Virus record (IMG/VR): IMGVR_UViG_3300032245_001860
Span: 1 to 64,000 of that record
Strand: one strand, 5' to 3'
Length of the DNA: 64,000 nucleotides
Shown here: positions 1,234 through 47,680 of the stretch, one piece after another
Layout of the letters: every line of letters begins with the position of its first letter
Numbering within the stretch: the first letter of the stretch is position 1
Notes under the pieces: generated by a model
Seen by the model: the letters and a program-made list of their open reading frames with translations, nothing else
What the model was told of the DNA's origin: nothing
Database searches by the model: none
Program-made: the position numbers and the translations under genes

Positions 1234-3219
1234 ATGATAGTTGATGACATGAGAGCCACAGTTTTGGTCAATGGAACGATGACAGAATCGTTCTTTACTG
1301 TAAAGCAAGAGAACCTTGCACATATCTTTTCTATTCTACGCAACAATTTGTATTCTGATAAGGCTGGCGCAATCATCCGTGAATATTGCACAAATGCCTA
1401 TGATGCTCACGTTCAAGCTGGCATCAAAGATACTCCAATTTCAATCAAGTGTCCAACATCATTCCACCAATTGCTTTGCATTCGTGACTATGGTTATGGT
1501 TTGTCAGAAGATGAGATTTTCAACATCTATGCATCCTATGGTGAATCCACAAAGCGTAACACAAATGACCAAGTAGGAATGATGGGTTTGGGTTCCAAGT
1601 CTGCATTCTCTTACACTGATTCATTCACCATCATATCTTACAATCAAGGTATGCAGAAAAATTACCTTGCATACATTGATGATTCTGGCATTGGTAAGGT
1701 CATGAAGGTAGAAGAGAATCCAACCACTGAGACTGGAATTGAAATTCAAATTCCTGTAGCACGTTTTGATTGTTACAAGTTTGAGAATGCCATCACCAAA
1801 CAATTGAAATTTTTCAGTCCAAAGCCTGTTATCAATCTCGCATATGTCCAAAGGTCTTTAGAAGAGAATCTCAATATTCACATCCATGGTGATGGGTACG
1901 ATATCATCAATTCCTACGACACACATTTTGTTGTGATGGGGAATGTTGCATATCCTTTTACCACTGAGACATTTGAGAATCACCCGCATTTCAAAGATGC
2001 AATTAACAGCTTAACTGAACATTCATTAAAAATTGTTCTGTATGCAAAGATAGGTGATGTAATACCATCTGCTTCCCGTGAATCTCTTGACTTATGTGAG
2101 AAGACCATCAATTGGATTGGTAATGCGTTAATCAATGTATCTGATGACGTTAAGCAAAACCTTGTCAGCCAAATGGATGCTTCCGACACAATCTGGAATA
2201 CAAAAGTAAGATTCTCAAATCTGAAATCCAAATTCCAAAGATTATTGACTGGCTACACAAAAGATGGCATTCTGTGTGATTCAAACCAGACTGATGTACC
2301 AAAGATTCCACTCATCACCGCCAAGAGACTGAATGAGAATAAGTTTGAGACTGTTGAGAAAATTTACAATACATCCCGGACTGTAATCTATGTTAGTAAA
2401 GGTGACGTAACATCTGGCTCAATCAAAAAGCGGATTAAGTTGGACAATCATTCATCTGATTTGTTGTATGCTGTTGAATGCAAAGATAGAGCCACATACA
2501 ATGAATTTATCAATCATCCTGAAATCATCGGCGCAAACATCATAGACCTTGCGACAATTGAACTACCAAAGATTGAACGTGAGAAAACAGCCTCCAATCA
2601 TGATGCTTATCAGTTTGTAGGTGACAGATATAACAATCAACCAAGAGATGCATGGCAAAAGACCCGTGTTAATTTCAAACTTGGAACAGGCGTATACATC
2701 AAGATTAGCAATTATAATGTCGAAGGCTTCTCTCCACATATGATGTACAAGGTACTTGAATCTCTTAAGGACTTGGGACATGAAATCACCTTGTATGGCA
2801 TTCGAGATAGTGATTCATCAAAATTGGGTGCTGGCTGGAAACACCTTAAAGTTTACGTGCAAGAGGTCATAGATAATTTGCCACAATCATTCAAGGATAG
2901 TGCTTCCAGAGGTTACATCCATGATTATATTGATATTGATACACGCTCTTTGTACGATTCATTTGCTCACTTAGATAATGACCCATTCAACTTTAAGGAC
3001 ATTGTAGACTTTGATAACTACAATTATGATGACACTAAAGCAATTCAAACGATAAGTTTGTTCATTAACTGTAATTTCAGATATGATTTGACAAAAGAGA
3101 AGCAAATTGTCAATGAATTGAAAGAATTACGGTCAAAGTATCCCTTAATTAAGTATACACAGATACATAGCGGTTCAATACCGTACATTAAGGAGTACAT
3201 TGAGGCTATGAACAGGTAG
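1234..3219 (+). CDS. rIIA: rIIA-like protein with N-terminal GHKL/HATPase domain
   Basis: LYSDK..IIREYCTNAYDAH, IRDYGYGLS and GMMGLGSKSAFSY motifs; directly upstream of rIIB-like gene. Confidence 0.88.
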   Translation: MIVDDMRATVLVNGTMTESFFTVKQENLAHIFSILRNNLYSDKAGAIIREYCTNAYDAHVQAGIKDTPISIKCPTSFHQLLCIRDYGYGLSEDEIFNIYASYGESTKRNTNDQVGMMGLGSKSAFSYTDSFTIISYNQGMQKNYLAYIDDSGIGKVMKVEENPTTETGIEIQIPVARFDCYKFENAITKQLKFFSPKPVINLAYVQRSLEENLNIHIHGDGYDIINSYDTHFVVMGNVAYPFTTETFENHPHFKDAINSLTEHSLKIVLYAKIGDVIPSASRESLDLCEKTINWIGNALINVSDDVKQNLVSQMDASDTIWNTKVRFSNLKSKFQRLLTGYTKDGILCDSNQTDVPKIPLITAKRLNENKFETVEKIYNTSRTVIYVSKGDVTSGSIKKRIKLDNHSSDLLYAVECKDRATYNEFINHPEIIGANIIDLATIELPKIEREKTASNHDAYQFVGDRYNNQPRDAWQKTRVNFKLGTGVYIKISNYNVEGFSPHMMYKVLESLKDLGHEITLYGIRDSDSSKLGAGWKHLKVYVQEVIDNLPQSFKDSASRGYIHDYIDIDTRSLYDSFAHLDNDPFNFKDIVDFDNYNYDDTKAIQTISLFINCNFRYDLTKEKQIVNELKELRSKYPLIKYTQIHSGSIPYIKEYIEAMNR

Positions 3220-5485: not shown

Positions 5486-5566
5486 CCTCCGGTGGTGGAA
5501 CGGTATACACGACGGACTTAAAATCCGTTGGCGCAAGCCTTACGAGTTCGAATCTCGTCTGGAGGA
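5486..5566 (+). tRNA. tRNA-Leu(TAA)
   Basis: Acceptor CCTCCGG/CTGGAGG, anticodon arm ACGGA-CTTAAAA-TCCGT, long variable arm, TTCGAAT T-loop. Confidence 0.93.
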
Positions 5567-5570
5567 CTTT

Positions 5571-5642
5571 GGGTTGGTAGCTCAGTGGTAGAGCAGTGCC
5601 CTTTTAAGGCATTGGTCGTGGGTTCAAATCCCACCCAACCCA
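5571..5642 (+). tRNA. tRNA-Lys(TTT)
   Basis: Acceptor GGGTTGG/CCAACCC, anticodon loop CTTTTAA, TTCAAAT T-loop. Confidence 0.95.
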
Positions 5643-5803
5643 TTTCACTTGGATTGTTTCATGCCTTTCTTACCAAGTGAAAACCAATCCCCCTCTTTCA
5701 GGCAGAGGGGGATTTCCTTATTTATGGGGTTATAATATTATAACCCCAAGATCTTGTTCTAAATAAAATTTGCACAGATTTAATTTATGTGATATAAAAG
5801 GAT

Positions 5804-6295
5804 ATGGAAAACACTACTATTGTTCCCACATTTGAGATTCATGTCCAGTTTAGTTGGAAATATCCCGGCAAGCCTTTTAAAAATATAGTCAAGGATGGCT
5901 ATATTCAATCTATTAATACAGAAGACAAATTGATTGCCGAAGAGTTTATCAATACCTTTGTCAGCAACTATGAGATTGGTATTTGTGAAGTGAAGGATAT
6001 GAAAATTCTATCCATCAAGAGAGTATTTACTTTTGATGAATGGGTGGAGAAATACAAGCCAATTCAGAATCATATAGAAGAATCAAGCACATTTGAGGGC
6101 TATGCTTTCGAGACATATGGTGAAGAGTTTGATTTCGTATGCAATCAATCTCCAGACAAAATTTGGACATTGAGAAACTTAGGTCATCGAGAAGTTATTA
6201 CATTTGGCTTGGGATGGGTTGACAGAGACTTTTATTTTGTCACTGAGAAGCCATGTGAAAAAGAAGATGAATTGAAACAAATCGTTGTGATATAA
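5804..6295 (+). CDS. Hypothetical phage protein
   Basis: 163-aa ORF; ATG 5 nt after TGA-TATAAA -10 box; FETYGEE motif common in phage proteins. Confidence 0.7.
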   Translation: MENTTIVPTFEIHVQFSWKYPGKPFKNIVKDGYIQSINTEDKLIAEEFINTFVSNYEIGICEVKDMKILSIKRVFTFDEWVEKYKPIQNHIEESSTFEGYAFETYGEEFDFVCNQSPDKIWTLRNLGHREVITFGLGWVDRDFYFVTEKPCEKEDELKQIVVI

Positions 6296-6309
6296 TTTGA
6301 GGAAACAAA

Positions 6310-6651
6310 ATGGGACTTGATAATTTTTGGAAGAAGAACCCAGATGAATTTGGTATTGTTAAAGCTAAGTTGAAAGTTTGTGGTTCAATGCTAAATGATG
6401 ATGATGATGAAAACTATTCATTTCGTGGCAAAGTATATTCTAATATAATTCAAGATGTTTCTATGGTTAATCTTTATGATGATATAATACCTCATGAAAC
6501 AGTGAAACAGATAGCAGATGATTTGGAATCTGTAACATTCATTCCAGAGTACATTGTTCATTATGACATTGAAGAAGATGAGTTTATAGACCTTGCCAAG
6601 ATGTTCAGACTCCATGCTGATGCTGGTCATTATCTTGTAAGTAGTTGGTGA
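6310..6651 (+). CDS. Hypothetical phage protein (MGLD...SW type)
   Basis: GAGG RBS; MGLD N-terminus, SFRGKVY motif. Confidence 0.7.
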   Translation: MGLDNFWKKNPDEFGIVKAKLKVCGSMLNDDDDENYSFRGKVYSNIIQDVSMVNLYDDIIPHETVKQIADDLESVTFIPEYIVHYDIEEDEFIDLAKMFRLHADAGHYLVSSW

Positions 6652-6656
6652 AAAAT

Positions 6657-6860
6657 ATGCCCCAAGATACATTAAATTATTTATCTGAAAAAACCGAGCA
6701 TGATTTGTTAGTCATACTTGAAGGATTTCGAATGCTTTTGGCTGATGCTGAATTGTTTGATATGTTAGCTGAAAAGTTAGATTACAATGATGATTGTCTA
6801 ATGGAATTGAGAGATGATGTTCAAAATTATCTTGAAGATGTTCTTGTAGATGTGGTATAA
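6657..6860 (+). CDS. Small acidic hypothetical protein
   Basis: ORF in operon with upstream genes, D/E-rich. Confidence 0.6.
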   Translation: MPQDTLNYLSEKTEHDLLVILEGFRMLLADAELFDMLAEKLDYNDDCLMELRDDVQNYLEDVLVDVV

Positions 6861-6870
6861 TTAGTTTGTT

Positions 6871-6955
6871 GGAGAGGTGGCTGAGTGGTCGATAGCGACT
6901 GTCTTGAAAACAGTTAACGTGAAAGCGTTCGCAGGTTCGAATCCTGTCCTCTCCT
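6871..6955 (+). tRNA. tRNA-Ser(TGA)
   Basis: Acceptor GGAGAGG/CCTCTCC, anticodon arm ACTGT-CTTGAAA-ACAGT, long variable arm AACG-TGAAAG-CGTT, TTCGAAT T-loop. Confidence 0.94.
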
Positions 6956-6968
6956 TTTTTAAAACACC

Positions 6969-7274
6969 ATGACTAAAGAACAAGCAGAAGAAATTAAAAC
7001 AACAATAGATGGTTTTAATAAGCTTTATCATCCTATAACTTTGTCTTTTGATATGTATAGAAATCCAAAAGAAGACCATGATGATAATTGGTTTGTCACT
7101 ATTGTTTATCATGTTACTCCAGATGATTGGTTTACTTTTGTTAGCTTAAGTTTTAATTTTGAAATGGTATCAGATAAGCTTAAAGGATATCAGTTTGCTT
7201 TGGAAGCAGTGCAAGCATATCAAGAAGAATATGGAAATTTAAAATTTTCTCATTCTGGCTTGCCTTTGGGGTAG
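6969..7274 (+). CDS. Hypothetical protein
   Basis: 101-aa ORF between tRNA-Ser and a terminator. Confidence 0.65.
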   Translation: MTKEQAEEIKTTIDGFNKLYHPITLSFDMYRNPKEDHDDNWFVTIVYHVTPDDWFTFVSLSFNFEMVSDKLKGYQFALEAVQAYQEEYGNLKFSHSGLPLG

Positions 7275-7438
7275 GAGTCAATATTGAAACAGAATGAGAG
7301 CTATCCCCCAGTTTAGTAGTGTTTTCTGGGGGATTTTTTATGCATGGGGTTATAATATTATAACCCCAATTCTCTTACTCAAAATAAAATTTGCATTTCA
7401 AGATATTGTGATATAATGAGCCATCAGAGGTAAATACA

Positions 7439-7816
7439 ATGTCGAAATCTATCAATGTTGTTTATATTGAAACTCCACGTCATGGCTATCTCAAGGTAGA
7501 TGGTGATGATGTTCGTGCAAGAAATATCAGTCAATCATTTTCAGACTATTCTTATTATGATGAAGACAATGATATTTTTTATCTTGAAGAAGACCGTGAT
7601 GCTTCAATGTTTTCTAAGCGATGTGAACTTGATGGTGTTACAACAATAGAAACAGATGAATACATGGATTCTGATGAAGAAGCAAAAAATATCCTTTGCC
7701 ATAATGATGCTCTTGGCGGTGATGTGGGATATTTTGGCGAACTTGAACAAAACCATGTAGGATTAGAAAAATTCTTCAGTGACGAAGATGATGATGACGA
7801 AGAAGATGAAGAGTAA
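7439..7816 (+). CDS. Acidic hypothetical phage protein
   Basis: GAGG RBS; TPRHGYLKV and FYLEEDRDA motifs, poly-D/E tail. Confidence 0.7.
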   Translation: MSKSINVVYIETPRHGYLKVDGDDVRARNISQSFSDYSYYDEDNDIFYLEEDRDASMFSKRCELDGVTTIETDEYMDSDEEAKNILCHNDALGGDVGYFGELEQNHVGLEKFFSDEDDDDEEDEE

Positions 7817-7945
7817 AATCTTTTCATTTTTAGAAATGGTGTATTTTATGATTTATTTCCTAATTGCTATCATTGCTGGTATCATACTTTATCCATTGTC
7901 TTTTCTTATTAAAAAAGAGCATTACGAAGAAAGTGGATATGATGT

Positions 7946-8176
7946 ATGAAATATGTGCTTTATGAAGTGACAGAAAATTATGATGTAGTAATCAAATTAT
8001 CTTTTGAGAATCACACATATTTAAATGCTTTTATTGAACAGCATACAACAGAAAAATCATATGAGCCAAAATTTCTTGTATTAGAATTTGATTCAAATGA
8101 TGATATTGAATATCTTTCTGAATATCAAGGAACTGAACAAAAAAGTCGAAAATATGTGGCGAAGATTATAGATTAA
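7946..8176 (+). CDS. Hypothetical protein
   Basis: 76-aa ORF in cassette. Confidence 0.55.
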   Translation: MKYVLYEVTENYDVVIKLSFENHTYLNAFIEQHTTEKSYEPKFLVLEFDSNDDIEYLSEYQGTEQKSRKYVAKIID

Positions 8177-8191
8177 AGGTATTATTAGTTT

Positions 8192-8312
8192 GTTCAAGAT
8201 GTCTTCAGCATCAAGAACAAAATCCAGAAGGTGGTGCTTCTGGAAAACCATGAGAAGGATGTATCTAAACCTCCTTTGCCAGTTCGTATCTCCTTGGTAC
8301 ATTCTTCTCATG
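8192..8312 (+). ncRNA. Putative structured small RNA with CU-rich anti-SD loop
   Basis: Hairpin TCCAGAAG/CTTCTGGA at 8223-8244; 15-bp stem 8249-8312 enclosing CCTCCTT and TCTCCTT. Confidence 0.5.
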
Positions 8313-8315
8313 ATT

Positions 8316-8383
8316 TGGTGGATAGCTTAAGTAGAGCAGAGGAACATAAGCCTTTGATATGGGTGCAAATCCCATTCCACCTT
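8316..8383 (+). tRNA. Degenerate tRNA-like element, CAT anticodon
   Basis: GGTGGA/TCCACC acceptor, ATGGG-TGCAAAT-CCCAT T arm, irregular anticodon arm. Confidence 0.5.
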
Positions 8384-8385
8384 TT

Positions 8386-8458
8386 GGGCGATTAGCTTAA
8401 TGGTTAAAGCAGGGGACTCATAATCCCTTGAGTGGGGGTTCGAGTCCCTCATCGCCCA
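8386..8458 (+). tRNA. tRNA with CAT anticodon (Ile2 likely, or Met)
   Basis: Acceptor GGGCGAT/ATCGCCC, anticodon arm GGGGA-CTCATAA-TCCCT, TTCGAGT T-loop. Confidence 0.92.
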
Positions 8459-8711
8459 TTGTTTCTGGTTGGTTGGTGTTTTGCATGTCCTATCTCTTCC
8501 CTCCATTAAAATTTCCAGAGAGAAATTATGGAGGGATTTTTTTATTTGAAAATCGAGCTTGGGGTGATTGAATAATCACCCCAATATTTCGAGATAAAAC
8601 ATACCACAATTGCCAGTTAAAGAATAAATTAGTTGATATAAATACACGCATTAGGTATACTATATTACGTGATGAAAATCACACAATGACAAAAGAAAGT
8701 CCTACAATAAA

Positions 8712-20322: not shown

Positions 20323-21919
20323 CTACTTTGCGTAATCTATGCTTTGGAATGTTGACTGCTTGAACATATCTGCTATCTTGTATGCCTCTGAAAGAAATGC
20401 ATAGATAGCACTTGAAAGAACCAAAAAACTACTTTGGTCATATGTCAGGTCTTTTGGCAAGATTTGATAGCACTGTTCATTTCCATTATTGAGAAATGTA
20501 TAAACTGTGCCTGAAATCTGCAATTTTTGTTTATTATATTGAACTTGAATTTGTCCAACATCATGAGTAATGACTAATACTAAATCTTGAGTGGCAAAAG
20601 AATCTATTGATTCTTTAACAAATGTTTCAGAGTCATAAATAAACTTTGCATTATTACTGTAAATCATTAGATTACTCTTCTCTTTTCATTCTCATCAGCG
20701 TTACTTATCATACAGCACAAAAAATAATAAAACAATACTGCAAAACAAGCAAGCATACCATTACTAAACAACCAGTATGCGGTTTTGCCATCACCTGTAA
20801 AAATCCACTCAAACAAACCATACACCAATGAAAGAGGAGTGGCACAAGCAAGAATGGTAAGAATGTTTTTCAATACTTTCAGACCTGTTGTGGTGTAAAG
20901 TCTCATATGGGCAAAAAAGACAAGCAATCCGCCACCCCAAACCACAACATACAATAATCTATTAACCATATCTAAAGTCATCCTGCTACCTCCCAATTTT
21001 CTGCCATTACATCTTCTGTCTTCAGAGTATAATATGCCCAATTAACTACATCACCATTTGAAAAAATAATCTTGAATTTCAATCGCTCATTTTCTAACTT
21101 GACAAATAGAATTGTGCTTTTATGTTCATATGGTTTTGTTCTTGTGATTGTTTGACCATCACGTAATGCTGGTAATACCTGTTCAAGTTTCATGATTAGA
21201 GTATACCATAGTATACTATCGTTGCAACAAAAATTAATTTATTTGACAAGATTATTTGGGGTGGTATTATTACCACCCCAAAAAGAAAACCCCAAGATAA
21301 ATTTCCTGGGGTTTTATATTATGCTTCTACGTTTACATACTTGGCTTCGGGATACCAGTGTTGAACCATCAGGACAGCTTCTTTTGGTTCCTGATCATCA
21401 AGATTATTTACAAAGTCTTTCAACAATGTAAAAAACTTGTATCTGGAAACCAATGTCAATGAAGTGTTTTCATCACCTGTAGTGAACTTTTCCAAAAACT
21501 GTTCCTGTTCATCATCACCCAATTCAATACTTTCAAAGATATATGAAGCATTCCAATAACCAACAGTTTCAACCGCCATTATTTCACCTCAACTTTCTTT
21601 GACAACATTCCAAATGCGATAGACAACAACGCCAAAGTTACAAGCACAGACATTACAATACTATCCATTACTTTGCCTCCTCTGCAAACGGGTCACCAAT
21701 CTCATCCTGTTCATCAAAAGCCTTGCCAATCGCTTCCAACTCTGCATCAAGTTTTGCAAGGTCTTCGGTAATCCAAGCCAACCTTTGTTCTGGTGTTGCA
21801 ATCTCGACTGAAAGAGAGGCTGAAACTTGGCACTTGAATGCCGTCTTTGCTACTTCACACTTGATAATGTAATCTTGATATGTCATCTCTATCCCCTTAC
21901 ACTTAGAAGTATACCACAA
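20323..21919 (-). CDS. Small hypothetical genes (20323-20667, 20667-~20981 membrane protein, 20978-21193, 21319-21579, 21668-~21886)
   Basis: Coupled minus-strand ORFs inside palindrome-delimited cassettes. Confidence 0.55.
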
Positions 21920-21994
21920 TATACTACCATTGCAAGAAAAATTAATTTATTTGACAAAATACTTTGGGGTGATATCAATATCACCCCAAATAAC

Positions 21995-22330
21995 AAATAA
22001 ACCCCCAAGAAAATTCTTAGGGGGTTTATTTGATGGTTACACTATAGAGGATTGATTTGTGGTTAGCTGGACTTCAACCAGTACGGAACACAAGGGCAGT
22101 TCTTTCGATGGTCTCTGCCTCCGATGTTATCCTTGTCCTTAAAGGAGCATGATACCCAACCACAAATCATTATACTTGGAGATATTGTTTGCGTCAATAG
22201 TCTCCAAGGTTTCAGTAAAAGATTGTGGACTAAACCACTCCAAGGTTGCTACCCTTATTTGGACTACGCAATTAGTCCGAGCCGTTCTGGTCTTTTACTG
22301 GATGAAGGTTGCTAATTACTTCAACCTTAC
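21995..22330 (-). ncRNA. Putative ~335-nt multi-stem non-coding RNA
   Basis: TTGACA-N17-TATTAT promoter (22365-22337), at least five helices, terminator at 21995-22031. Confidence 0.6.
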
Positions 22331-22797
22331 TTTGTTATAATACTGGAATAATCTTCGTTTGTCAAGGAGTAGACTGGAAGAAATTCCTTAACTAATTTCC
22401 ATCCTTGTTCTTCATGGGCAAAATCTAAGACCCACCATTGACCACCAGAATAAAGATAATAAAAGTCAGCCATAGTAGAATAGAAAGGTTTCATCCATTC
22501 ATCCAGTGAGACAACCTCAGCAATGACTTCTGATGAATCCTCTCCACGGTCTCTGCCATATGCTACACATACATAGGCTTGAGGCTTATCGAAAGAATGC
22601 TCACCTGTAGGATTGAGATTTTGAGCCAATTGTGAAAGGTCACCAAGCTCTAAGAGTGCATCAATATTTTCTTCAGTGTTATAATACTCTACAAGAGTTT
22701 CACCTACACCACCCTCAATATATCCATCCCAATGACAATAAATTTGTTTGATTGTGCCATCAGGTAACATTTTGCCGATTCTTGAATTGGTTGCCAT
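22327..22797 (-). CDS. Conserved phage protein (MATxSRIG...IYCHWDGY family)
   Basis: IYCHWDGY, LLELGDLS.L and AYGRDRGE motifs. Confidence 0.75.
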   Translation of the reverse strand: MATNSRIGKMLPDGTIKQIYCHWDGYIEGGVGETLVEYYNTEENIDALLELGDLSQLAQNLNPTGEHSFDKPQAYVCVAYGRDRGEDSSEVIAEVVSLDEWMKPFYSTMADFYYLYSGGQWWVLDFAHEEQGWKLVKEFLPVYSLTNEDYSSIITK

Positions 22798-22824: not shown

Positions 22825-24043
22825 TTATTTCCACATATTTTTAGGCTTGGTAGACCTTTCACCGGGCATATAGAATTTCTTAATCTTATTCTTGTTGTAT
22901 GTCCAGCGTCCAACCAATTCGCCTAAGGGATTTTCATCAGTAGCCTTGTAAATAGCAAAATACCAGCCTTCAAGCGCATATTTCTTTGCTGTTTCCTTAG
23001 CCTGAATCAAAGTGGTGCAAGGCGTTAAAGATTTGGTTTTATCCCAAGTTTCGCCGATAACGATTCTGTATAGTGTCATAGGTTAAGTATATCAGTTTAT
23101 ATCAAAAATGCAAGGAAAATTATTTTATTTGACATAAAAAAATGGGGTGGTTTTTATACCACCCCAAAATCCTGCCAACAATATAAATTATTAGCAGGAT
23201 AGAACTTTTTTCTAATTTACTCCAGTTTCCAGTCTGACGGAATATGATTTGTTTTTAGCCCATTGCATTCCAAACAAATCAAAAATTCCAATTACTAATA
23301 ACGCAATATGCCATTCTTCAAACTGACTATGAATATCAACTACACTGCCAAAAGTAAATTTGGTGTTTTCATAAAAGATTGAAAACATCAGAGCTGCAAC
23401 AAAAACCTGAACATACAAACATAACTTTTCATAACTCTTTAACTTCATAACTTTTCTCCTACACAGGTAGTATACCACAATATACTACCTGTGTTAATTA
23501 ATTTTAAGGAAGATTTGCGACAAAGTCACTCAGGAAGGAATCGTAATTTCTTTTAGAGTTATCCTTAAGAATACGCTCTATGGTCATGCGACTTTCGAGT
23601 AATTTGTAATGGGAATCATTGTTTTGTTTTTCGATGAGTTTTTCGATGGATTCTTTAAGCTCTTCTGACTTAACATAGAATGAAGCATCAATATCATCCA
23701 GTGTTGCGATAAAGTCTTCAGCAACCAAACCACCATGTTGAGATTTCTTGCCATGAGAGAGACGAGCAACCTCAGTAACAGGAACAAGCATCCAATCAAT
23801 CTTAGAATCAAGTGTGCCAATTCCAAGCAGATGAATTGCCATGTTGATAGTTTCCATCTGATTGAAGTTTTGCACAGAACTGTTAAGGTCAGTTACAGAA
23901 ACTTTCAATTGATAATCTTCACCATTGTAAACAAAATATTTAATCTTGTTCTTGATAATAAGAGAGTCACCCAAAATTTCTTTGAGCGATTCAAGACCAT
24001 AAGTGTTAATGCTTCGGTTTTTCATAACTGGATTGTATCTCAC
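22825..24043 (-). CDS. Hypothetical genes (22825-23079, 23212-~23448 membrane protein, 23504-~24025)
   Basis: Each has its own extended -10 promoter. Confidence 0.55.
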
Positions 24044-44134: not shown

Positions 44135-45868
44135 TTAGTTTCCTTTTTTATAGTTTTTATTATTATACACACCTGCATAGGCCCAATTTTCATCTTTATC
44201 AGTCATTGGCCTTTCAGTGAGCTTGTCTATTGTTTGATTGTTATTTTCTTCTATTTCGTGTTTAGGAGCAAATAATCTTAATTGTGATCTGTTATTTTCT
44301 ATTTGTTTTTCATGAAGATCAAGAAGTGGTTGTGTTTTTAAGAACGGGATTATTTCATCATCACTGTAGAAATTTTTTCTATATCCACTTGGTATTCTAA
44401 AATCATTGCCTGTCTTTTCTTTATATTGAAATGCAAATTTACTTTTCTCAAAGAAATTTTCTATTTTATTTGCCACTAAAAAATAAAGATATTCAGGTTG
44501 TTTTTGATACCAAGACATGAATGGTTCTTTTGATTCTGAATCTTTATATTTTTCTTTTGCTTCTTCAAACTTTTTTGTAGCTGTTTCAAGTACACCATTG
44601 ACATCTAAATATCTTTCAAAATTGTGTGTAGTAAATGATTTTTTTAATGCTAATTCTGCTTTGTGTTCTAATGCAGTGTAGAAAGTGTTAGCGTAATCAT
44701 CAAGAGGATAATCTTCTATTGTATATGCTTCATTATCCCAATTAAATGCACTACCTGATCTTTGTAATCCATCATGCATTTCACTAATTGCAGCATCTAT
44801 AATATCTGGAATATGTGAGCCATAAAGATTTGATTCAGCGAATTGTTCATGATTCCAAACAGGAGATATAATTCCAAATCTGTTAAAATCTTCTGTTACA
44901 TCATCATCAATAGCATCATATTCTGATTCATCTGGGCCATAAATAGATTCTGTTATAGCGTATCCAATTTGATCAGGTTCATATGTCCAATAAATTCTTT
45001 CTTGCCAATCTTCAAAATGATCAGCTACAGGATTTATATTAGATTGTTTTTTGATATCTTCTCTGTCGTCAAAAAATTCTCTAATTTTTTCCACTAAATC
45101 ATCATCTTCAACTTTAGCATTATTTGGGCCCTTGATTTGAATTACTTTATCACCTTGTATTTCAATTGTTGCTTTAGGTTGATTTTGTGGATCTCTTAAG
45201 GAATAGATTCTTGAATGTCCTCTTCTCACTGCATCCCAATATCCAGCAACACAGTGATGCATTTTTGCACCTTCAACATCAAGATCATTTTCTGATTTGA
45301 CATTTACCATATTCCAACCATCAGGATATGCCATTACTACTTCTCGGTCAGCTGGATTGTAAAATTTACCTCCACCTTTACCTATAAGTATTTGCTCCCA
45401 TTCATCTGTGTCTTCAACCACTTGTTCCCAGGACTTCAATCCAAGATTATAATCAGGGTCATTTGTTTCAATATTGTTGACAAAATCTTGCATATGGAGA
45501 GCTTGTTCTAAAAAATTAGCATGCTCACCATTCATACCACCTGAAGGAATATTATGATCATATTCACCATTAGGTTTTTGAGGTTGTATTCTCCAGCCTT
45601 TTAATTTATGAAATAACCAGTTTTTAAATCTTTCATTTGTGAAGTTGTCTAATATGAATTTTTCTTCTCTTGTTGGTCTATTTTGACTTGAAAGATTTTC
45701 TAATTCTTGCAATGTGATATTTGGATTTTGTTTGATTGCGCCTAACATTTTACCTTTGGCAGCATTATCAAATTTGGGGTCAGAAAAAACAGCTAAAATA
45801 GATTCATTTATGCCTTGAGTTCTAAGCTTTTCTACTTCATCTTGTAAACTTGCAAATCTGTACCACAT
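44135..45868 (-). CDS. PcfJ-like domain protein with MWYR N-terminus
   Basis: LDVEGAKMHHCVAGY...IYSLRD..QPKATIEI...QIKGPNN. Confidence 0.78.
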   Translation of the reverse strand: MWYRFASLQDEVEKLRTQGINESILAVFSDPKFDNAAKGKMLGAIKQNPNITLQELENLSSQNRPTREEKFILDNFTNERFKNWLFHKLKGWRIQPQKPNGEYDHNIPSGGMNGEHANFLEQALHMQDFVNNIETNDPDYNLGLKSWEQVVEDTDEWEQILIGKGGGKFYNPADREVVMAYPDGWNMVNVKSENDLDVEGAKMHHCVAGYWDAVRRGHSRIYSLRDPQNQPKATIEIQGDKVIQIKGPNNAKVEDDDLVEKIREFFDDREDIKKQSNINPVADHFEDWQERIYWTYEPDQIGYAITESIYGPDESEYDAIDDDVTEDFNRFGIISPVWNHEQFAESNLYGSHIPDIIDAAISEMHDGLQRSGSAFNWDNEAYTIEDYPLDDYANTFYTALEHKAELALKKSFTTHNFERYLDVNGVLETATKKFEEAKEKYKDSESKEPFMSWYQKQPEYLYFLVANKIENFFEKSKFAFQYKEKTGNDFRIPSGYRKNFYSDDEIIPFLKTQPLLDLHEKQIENNRSQLRLFAPKHEIEENNNQTIDKLTERPMTDKDENWAYAGVYNNKNYKKGN

Positions 45869-45871
45869 AGT

Positions 45872-47680
45872 TTAAGCCTTGTTCGCCAATCTAAATCTTT
45901 TATTATTGAATGAATATCTCCACTCATTCACGCCTTCAGTAAATAATTTTTGCTGTTGTCTTCTACTTAAGAAATCTTGGTAATAATCTTCTGTTCCTCT
46001 ATACAATGCTTCACTTGGAGTAACTGGTGAAACATCTAAATTAATAGATAGTTTATTTGCAATATCATAAAACTCTTTTGGCATATTGTTTCTTATATAG
46101 GTATACAAAGCTCTATAAAAATAAACAGGATAAACATCATAAATATTTTCATATTCTTTGAGTTGATGATAACCTCTTGAATCTGGCCTCTCATATGGTT
46201 GATTTGCTAATTCATTTATTTCATCATCACTCATATTTTCAAGATTTAATTTGACAGGTTTGTTTCCAGGATTAAATTCTTCACTTACTGCTGCTTCTTT
46301 ATAATCTCTAATTTTTTCTAATTCTTCTGAGAGAGCTTCTTTGTATTTATGTCTTATATCATCTATATTAAGACCGCTTATTATAATTTCTCTGTTTGTT
46401 CCTAAAGTACCAACTTGAGATGCATAGTCCTTAATTTTTTCTAAATCTTTACGAATATACATATCGCCAAGTAAAGAAATTAATTCATCAAATCTATCAT
46501 CATCAGGTATTTCTTGATAAGTTTTATAATAACCAGCATTATCTACCCCGACTTGACTGATTAAATATTCAACTGGCAAGTCTCTGTAAAGGTCATCATA
46601 ATCTCTTTCAATTGGCCTGTAACGAACACCCAATTCGTCAGTCATTGTTTCATCATTTTCAGGATTTAAATAATCTGCAATTGCATACAAAGCATCTTGT
46701 TCAGACATATTCTGATTCAGGTTCAGGTCTTCATTGAGATCATGTTTAGAATAAAAATTATTTTGTTCAATCCAGTAAAGAGCTAATTTTTTATACTCTG
46801 GTTTGGGTGGTTTATTGCCTTTGCCTTGAATTTGCTTTACTTTGTCAGGCAATCCTATTTCTATAGTAACATGTGGTTTGTTTGATTCATCTCTTAAAGA
46901 ATAAGTGTCGCTAATGCCTTGTTCATATAAGCCATGGTAATTATTTGTGCCTGTACAGTGACCCATATTTTGACCTTCAGCATCAAAATCTCTTTCTTGG
47001 GTAAGTTTGACCATCATCCAATCATTGTATTCTTCAGGTAATCCTAAAGATTTAACTGTCTGTGCATCAAAAATCATTACTACATTTGGGTCAACTATTT
47101 TGCCATTTTCTTTCTTGATTTTAGAATATGTTGCACCTGGTTCTTGATTACTTAATTCTTCATGCCATATTTCACTGGCTCTACTTGCTTGATCTAAATT
47201 CATAGAAAAAATATTGAATCTTGGGTTTTCACTTACATATTCAACATACCAATCTAAAATATGATAAAGCTCATTTGTAACACCGATAATTGGTCCTATA
47301 GCAATATGTGAAAATTTAGGATAACTGAATTTTTCTGGGTCATGTTGATTTGGTCTGTAAGAAGGTAAAGCTACTCTTTCAACCCATTTATAAAAATTAG
47401 CTTTTTGTTCTTCGGAAATATTCATTCCTGATAATCTTGTGTCTAAATCTGCTAATAATCTTAATTCGTCATTAGATACTTTTTGTAATTGATTAGTTTG
47501 GAATTTGCCTTGTAATTCATCCCAAGGCATAAGAGGATTTTGCATCAAGGCTCCAATATATTTACCTCTTAATGGTATATCGGTCATTGCTTGTAGGTTA
47601 TCAATTGTGTCATCGCTTACACCTTTAGATTTAAGTGTTTCAAAAGCTCGTTCTACGTTTTGTGCAAGTCTATACCACAT
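45872..47680 (-). CDS. PcfJ-like domain protein (paralogue) with MWYR N-terminus
   Basis: EGQNMGHCTG...YSLRDESNKPHVTIEI...QIQGKGN. Confidence 0.78.
   Translation of the reverse strand: MWYRLAQNVERAFETLKSKGVSDDTIDNLQAMTDIPLRGKYIGALMQNPLMPWDELQGKFQTNQLQKVSNDELRLLADLDTRLSGMNISEEQKANFYKWVERVALPSYRPNQHDPEKFSYPKFSHIAIGPIIGVTNELYHILDWYVEYVSENPRFNIFSMNLDQASRASEIWHEELSNQEPGATYSKIKKENGKIVDPNVVMIFDAQTVKSLGLPEEYNDWMMVKLTQERDFDAEGQNMGHCTGTNNYHGLYEQGISDTYSLRDESNKPHVTIEIGLPDKVKQIQGKGNKPPKPEYKKLALYWIEQNNFYSKHDLNEDLNLNQNMSEQDALYAIADYLNPENDETMTDELGVRYRPIERDYDDLYRDLPVEYLISQVGVDNAGYYKTYQEIPDDDRFDELISLLGDMYIRKDLEKIKDYASQVGTLGTNREIIISGLNIDDIRHKYKEALSEELEKIRDYKEAAVSEEFNPGNKPVKLNLENMSDDEINELANQPYERPDSRGYHQLKEYENIYDVYPVYFYRALYTYIRNNMPKEFYDIANKLSINLDVSPVTPSEALYRGTEDYYQDFLSRRQQQKLFTEGVNEWRYSFNNKRFRLANKA

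Follow-up and report, generated by a model that had tools for sequence, protein, structure and literature searches.

An abundant structured non-coding RNA of freshwater phages without a counterpart in Rfam

Analysis of a 64,000-nucleotide stretch of DNA (hereafter the window; positions 1 to 64,000 of the IMG/VR virus record IMGVR_UViG_3300032245_001860) showed that the minus strand from 22330 to about 21996 carries a separately transcribed non-coding RNA gene of roughly 334 nucleotides. The predicted fold of this RNA is conserved across about 50 related sequences, the RNA is very abundant in lake and river RNA samples as judged from contig depth, and it matches no described RNA family. It therefore represents a new RNA class, the function of which is not yet known. 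The first-pass annotation had proposed a highly structured non-coding RNA of about 335 nt and unknown class on the minus strand, located between a promoter and a terminator, and each part of this proposal was supported. In contrast, the anti-Shine-Dalgarno-like sequence CAUGCUCCUUU that it had also pointed out, although present at 22151-22141, is not a conserved feature of the family, for which the consensus at this position is CUAUGCUCUCUUU; an anti-Shine-Dalgarno reading was rejected for this reason.

The window is the first 64 kb of a 315,852-bp record (33% G+C, CheckV completeness 88%), that is, of an uncultured jumbo phage. Its large terminase is only 23-26% identical to that of any deposited phage, so no host could be assigned. 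Near-identical DNA occurs in many freshwater, lake and aquatic metagenomes. The G+C content of the locus is 0.415-0.42, against 0.333 for the whole genome.

The flanking signals of a transcription unit were present. A near-consensus sigma-70-type promoter, TTGACA-17-TATTAT (11 of 12 match), lies at 22365..22337 on the minus strand, with the −35 element at 22365-22360 and the −10 element at 22342-22337, inside the last codons of an upstream 156-aa ORF; the predicted start is about G22330. In nearly all homologues, a −10 element TAATAT/TATTAT sits at the same distance from the core, with a −35 element TTGACA or TTGCAN. A 3′ tail (22052-22024) that is conserved in neither length nor sequence is followed by an intrinsic terminator hairpin (22023-22002) and its U tract, and transcription from about G22330 to the U tract gives about 334 nt. 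By a strict rule, a terminator was found within 170 nt of the core in 30 of 43 homologues. The adjacent segment at 21899..21990 is not part of the RNA; it is a copy of a repeated intergenic cassette (palindrome 21990-21963 plus promoter TTGCAA-16-TATACT) that starts the next gene, 21919-21668. An internal promoter-like match at 22197..22169 is formed by the pseudoknot loop and the inter-domain linker, and it is not kept in the second sequence class of the family.

Homologues of the upstream protein led to two close relatives whose RNA is 98-99% identical. Pattern scans of IMG/VR and a scan of metagenome contigs, the latter yielding about 35 true members, followed by nhmmer filtering, gave about 50 non-redundant members at 68-99% identity. 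The contigs included ones of 300-358 kb, and the metagenome members that could be placed by their run records were freshwater or aquatic. Notably, the RNA core is 81-87% identical in pairs where the DNA of the neighbouring protein gene is only 60-78% identical, in line with purifying selection on the RNA.

The minus strand folded to −109.8 kcal/mol (z = −5.48), and 0 of 100 shuffled sequences folded as well, whereas the plus strand gave z = −4.75. On a 39-sequence, 300-column alignment, RNAalifold predicted 70 pairs, 30 of them with compensatory double changes. One helix that it had missed, CG[G/U/A]A with U[C/A/U]CG, and a loop–loop pseudoknot were added. In the resulting 79-pair structure, 98.3% of cells pair, against 32-42% when the partners were slid and 92.4% when shuffled, and 31 pairs show double changes, against 2-8 when slid and 17.3 ± 1.9 when shuffled (0 of 500 shuffles reached the observed value). 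Many pairs alternate between G-C or A-U and G-U (e.g., GU:17 at columns 135/165); on the other strand these would be C-A mismatches, so the RNA sense is the minus strand of the window. Mutual information between unpaired columns gave no convincing further tertiary pairs.

The four helices named in the first-pass annotation were all present and conserved. P1 (22305-22311/22322-22328, within 22305..22330) is a 5′-terminal hairpin that starts at or within 2 nt of the predicted +1; its sequence varies, but all 22 distinct P1 sequences in the family fold into a hairpin of at least 5 bp. In domain 1, P2 (22300-22291/22222-22213) closes a five-way junction holding P2a (22290-22282, invariant loop CCAGAACGG), P2b (22278-22261), P2c (22257-22241, invariant loop GUAGCAA) and P2d (22238-22225). 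Double changes were found in four pairs of P2, in five of six of P2b and in two of P2d, and the junction nucleotides are invariant. The P3 hairpin (22175..22208; outer part 22175-22182/22201-22208) covaries at six pairs. Its loop CGCAA (22193-22189) pairs with the P2b loop UUGCG (22271-22267) in the proposed pseudoknot. These loops are invariant in the 39-sequence alignment, but the divergent member L009 has UUGUG with CACAA, which is one compensatory event, and the member L021 has UUGUG with CGCAA, which gives a G-U pair. The pseudoknot is thus supported, but only thinly. Domain 2 (22053..22170) is a four-way cloverleaf comprising the long stem P4 (22170-22157/22066-22053, including the annotated 22053-22064/22158-22169), P4a (22156-22126), P4b (22123-22084, with the invariant 15-nt loop AGACCAUCGAAAGAA at 22114-22100) and P4c (22081-22067), a T-arm-like hairpin CUGG-UUGAAGU-CCAG whose loop is invariant in the family as UUGAANU. 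Five pairs of P4 and seven of P4a covary, and the P4b base pair runs G-C/U-A/A-U.

The RNA is non-coding. The 63-aa plus-strand ORFs are not conserved: the longest stop-free stretch changes strand and frame between members and falls to 34-46 codons in some, and variable columns show no three-base periodicity in either 63-aa frame.

Comparison with known families was likewise negative. Against Rfam 15 (4,227 models), the whole window at gathering thresholds gave only five tRNAs elsewhere; at E ≤ 10, the region 21800-22500 gave only attenuator and terminator look-alikes on the two 3′ hairpins, plus one chance match at 22211-22263 (E = 5.9); and six other members searched at E ≤ 1 gave nothing on the RNA. 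Accordingly, there was no match to tmRNA, RNase P RNA, 6S RNA or SRP RNA, and ARAGORN found no tRNA or tmRNA at the locus. A BLAST search of the locus against 50,697 deposited phage genomes gave no match, and neither its characteristic sequences, in DNA or RNA spelling, nor a description of this RNA was found in the literature searched. A screen for structured RNAs in IMG/VR (PMC10690425) reported candidates of 30-151 nt that are not characterised individually, and that screen may have caught pieces of this RNA.

The RNA is expressed. In four metatranscriptomes from different studies, contigs at least 80% alike cover only 22056-22318, where the summed depth reaches 100-400, while the flanking genes are at zero apart from traces of depth 2-3. 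In a fifth RNA run, the depth reaches about 8,800 with zero on the flanks. In contrast, three DNA runs cover the flanks (45-50 in the best holder) and the gene (58-137) alike. Contigs bridging both domains occur in four RNA runs. However, Logan contigs carry no strand and are a poor measure of expression level, and the conserved gene also gathers contigs from several strains.

A covariance model built on this family, with the window copy as a seed sequence, found exactly one copy in each of three related large phage records, which share 76-81% identical terminases with the window phage; related records scored 277-320 bits. It also found one copy in each of two phages rated 100% complete by CheckV, namely a full copy in a phage of 70 kb and a domain-1-only copy (L009, 105 bits) in a phage of 84 kb, neither of which has a detectable homologue of the TerL of the window phage. 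In L363 (147 bits), from a jumbo relative with a 43%-identical terminase, domain 1 is intact but domain 2 is replaced by a tRNA-like cloverleaf on an extended 12-bp stem, scoring 28.5 bits on RF00005 against a cut-off of 29; ARAGORN found nothing there either. Four members (L011, L019, L144 and L201) carry an extra domain of about 110 nt between P3 and P4, and three others have a hairpin inserted in the P4b internal loop. Domain 1 is thus the constant element, and domain 2 is exchangeable. Among cellular genomes, none of 120 loci returned by a scan was a true member, and nothing was found by BLAST in 802 sampled Cyanobacteriota and Burkholderiales genomes or by the model in five whole genomes, although the scan was compromised and absence from cellular genomes is not shown.

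The surrounding 14-27 kb holds small genes on the minus strand, separated by at least 11 copies (between 14.1 and 27.2 kb) of a cassette of about 95 nt made of a 26-bp palindrome and a promoter, and the same small genes are shuffled in order between loci. One neighbour family carries the Thoeris anti-defence Tad2-like domain; its window member, 20978-21193, was assigned by BLAST clustering. The 156-aa protein (phrog_1987) lies upstream in 21 of 33 loci, yet its distant homologues have no RNA beside them. In L021, a Mom-like gene follows the RNA, but a link to Mom, a DNA-modifying enzyme that uses charged tRNA (PMC13219725), was rejected because Mom is absent from five other carrier records. 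A bacterial Y RNA (YrlA) was not supported, as no Ro60/Rsr (TROVE) gene was found in the 315.9-kb phage record in a search whose positive controls did match, although a host-encoded Rsr cannot be excluded. Similarly, a retron msr-msd or DGR template RNA was rejected because no reverse transcriptase (RVT_1) was found in that record.

Taken together, the explanation we favour, as somewhat more likely than not, is an independent gene for a stable, very abundant RNA that acts in trans. Host sigma-70 RNA polymerase would start at the strong promoter, and the RNA would begin with a protective 5′ hairpin and end at the intrinsic terminator. Domain 1 is present in every variant and is therefore taken to be the functional, binding core, whereas domain 2, which can be lost or swapped, is taken to be an accessory tRNA-shaped module for stability, processing or docking. 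Action in trans is inferred from the RNA having its own promoter and terminator, from its varying neighbours and from its stable accumulation with protected ends. The most likely mode of action is the binding, as a decoy or a recruiter, of a host or phage factor early in infection, which would fit the host-takeover and anti-defence gene region in which the RNA sits. However, this mechanism is inferred and no partner or target was identified; the anti-defence context rests on two Pfam hits in neighbouring genes and does not bear on the RNA itself. Moreover, L009 and L021 lack the terminator and run straight into an ORF, an arrangement that would suit a cis-acting role.

A cis-acting sensor (riboswitch or leader), in which domain 1 would be a ligand- or factor-binding aptamer and its pseudoknot to P3 would control the downstream gene by terminator read-through or by freeing a ribosome-binding site, is possible but unlikely. 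In L009, domain 1 sits directly upstream of an 88-aa ORF, and the 3′ strand of P3 (UCUCCC) could alternatively pair with the Shine-Dalgarno sequence AAGGGGA. Invariant junction nucleotides beside variable peripheral helices are typical of aptamers, and a junction core joined by a kissing loop to a 3′ hairpin appears to resemble the layout of cobalamin riboswitches. Nevertheless, 30 of 43 members have a strong terminator, followed by a separate promoter cassette for the next gene; the spacer between core and terminator varies without conserved alternative pairing; the downstream gene differs between loci; the RNA accumulates to very high levels with no signal on the downstream gene; and no riboswitch family matches.

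A self-assembling architectural RNA, like ROOL (RF03087), GOLLD (RF01998) or OLE, is about as doubtful. Like GOLLD and ROOL, for which homo-oligomeric assemblies have been reported (PMC12286853), the RNA is phage-borne, multi-domain, supported by covariation, highly abundant and of unknown function; those RNAs are also associated with tRNA genes or tRNA-like elements, and GOLLD was first seen in lake metagenomes. The invariant exposed loops include the self-complementary UCGA in the P4b loop. However, there is no match to the ROOL or GOLLD models, the helices and junctions differ in topology, the invariant loops give no covariation bearing on intermolecular pairing, and at about 290 nt the RNA is much smaller, half their size or less if those RNAs are roughly 580 and 800 nt.

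It is also unlikely that the RNA is a ribozyme or a precursor from which domain 1 is released by RNase P, RNase Z or self-cleavage. The tRNA-like replacement in L363, the T-loop-like hairpin next to the 3′ strand of the long stem and a depth over domain 1 exceeding that over domain 2 by 3-40 fold in two RNA runs could point in this direction. In contrast, RNA contigs bridge the two domains in four runs, no ribozyme family matches, and the acceptor-like stem of 11-15 bp, with no single-stranded leader at the expected cleavage point, seems unlike an RNase P substrate. The difference in depth could also reflect only a pile-up of strains on the more conserved domain. Although P4c abuts the 3′ strand of the stem as a T arm does, domain 2 differs from tRNA in its far longer arms, its lack of an anticodon loop, a D-loop GG and a 3′ CCA, and a G or A in the T-loop where tRNA has C56.

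A base-pairing regulatory RNA is improbable: invariant single-stranded loops of 7-15 nt and early, strong expression would allow it, but complementary 10-mers in the phage genome are no more frequent than expected, and the size and elaborate conserved tertiary fold are unlike typical seed-pairing sRNAs. A small protein gene or a chance fold, suggested only by ORFs of 44-63 codons on both strands of this copy, is refuted by the compensatory changes and the absence of a conserved frame.

A more speculative and improbable reading is that domain 1 is a natural aptamer with which the phage floods the cell early in infection as an RNA-based counter-defence, acting as a decoy or sponge for a host immune component or signalling nucleotide. 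It would be the RNA counterpart of protein sponges such as the Tad2-like protein encoded nearby, with domain 2 stabilising or docking the RNA. This would be a new kind of phage anti-defence molecule and a new fold class among large RNAs.

As a stable RNA encoded among small, shuffled early genes separated by promoter-plus-stem-loop cassettes, it may be comparable to species 1 and 2 of the phage T4 tRNA region and to the promoter-early stem-loop (PeSL) cassettes of T4-type hyperplastic regions. Large, elaborately folded RNAs with strong covariation and very high expression are rare, and each earlier find (RNase P, tmRNA, OLE, GOLLD, ROOL and raiA) opened a line of biochemistry. The present RNA is among the more strongly represented phage-derived sequences in several lake, river and sediment metatranscriptomes, and its natural variants supply ready-made constructs for dissecting function. 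Its occurrence in phage lineages that share no detectable terminase homology points to a selectable function directed at the host. If it proves to be an RNA-based takeover or counter-defence factor, it would add a new category to phage–host conflict.

Natural variants of the RNA differed in the portion that follows domain 1. At L363:4236-4330 (-) (IMGVR_UViG_3300016476_001169), a variant of the RNA was found in which domain 2 is replaced by a tRNA-like cloverleaf. This element has a D loop with GG and a T loop UUCGAGG, but carries a CCGG tetraloop instead of an anticodon loop, and it sits on a 12-bp stem. Its score on RF00005 was 28.5 bits, just under the cut-off. At L009:3662-3800 (-) (IMGVR_UViG_3300020050_009836, an 84-kb phage record rated complete), domain 1 occurs alone, immediately upstream of an 88-aa ORF. 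In this member, the 3' strand of the P3 hairpin could alternatively pair with the Shine-Dalgarno sequence of that ORF, which would be a possible cis-regulatory use of the same fold. Additionally, four members (L011, at positions 7870-7980, and also L019, L144 and L201) carry an extra structured domain of about 110 nt inserted between P3 and P4. This insertion contains GGAUUGCAACC, which resembles the P2c hairpin GGGUAGCAACC.

Within the RNA itself, an internal sigma-70-like match (TTGACG-17-TATAAT, 11 of 12) was identified at 22169-22197 (-) of the window. It is formed by the invariant pseudoknot loop and the inter-domain linker and would start transcription at the base of domain 2. However, this match is not kept in the second sequence class and is thus probably coincidental. 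Upstream of the RNA core, a 121-aa ORF of unknown function was found at L018:1059-1424 (+), one of the loci carrying the RNA, with homologues in 13 other loci. This ORF is transcribed divergently and starts a constant 93-106 nt upstream of the core (102-106 in 13 of the 14 loci), although it is absent from the window. In the 70-kb phage rated complete (G005, locus L021), the upstream region of the RNA has no sigma-70-type promoter, and a Mom-like protein (PF25680; L021:935-1915 (-)) lies two genes downstream of the RNA. Mom is reported to use charged tRNA-Gly to modify DNA (PMC13219725), but no Mom gene is present in five other carrier records.

Proteins with the HATPase_c_3 (GHKL/MORC-like ATPase) domain recur near the RNA in 8 loci (for example, L019:3285-4631 and L158:5691-7274), and one is present in the window at 1234-3219 (+). 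Two adjacent PcfJ-like proteins lie at 44135-47680. The window also contains a tRNA cluster (Leu-UAA, Lys-UUU, Ser-UGA and Met-CAU) at 5486-8459 (+), in which Rfam calls a fifth, weaker tRNA at 8316-8383 (39.4 bits) that is not called by ARAGORN. In the related 300-kb phage (G002), the large terminase matches in two pieces about 1 kb apart within a single 1,077-aa open frame (C1:205683-208892 (-)), suggesting an intein or another in-frame insertion.

The small minus-strand genes between 14142 and 27235 of the window are separated by at least 11 copies of an intergenic cassette of about 95 nt (for example, at 21899-22000, 21191-21292 and 23077-23178). Each cassette has a 26-bp palindrome (TTGGGGTGATAATATTATCACCCCAA), a TTGACA box and a promoter TTGCAA-16-TATACT, and the palindrome also carries a plus-strand TTGACA-N16/17-TAATAT match. 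These cassettes resemble the promoter-early stem-loop cassettes thought to drive gene shuffling in T4-type phages. Furthermore, a 71-aa protein encoded at 20978-21193 (-) of the window was assigned, by BLAST clustering, to a neighbour family whose L019 member matches the Thoeris anti-defence Tad2-like domain (PF11195, E = 3.9e-6), which suggests that this region is an anti-defence or accessory island.
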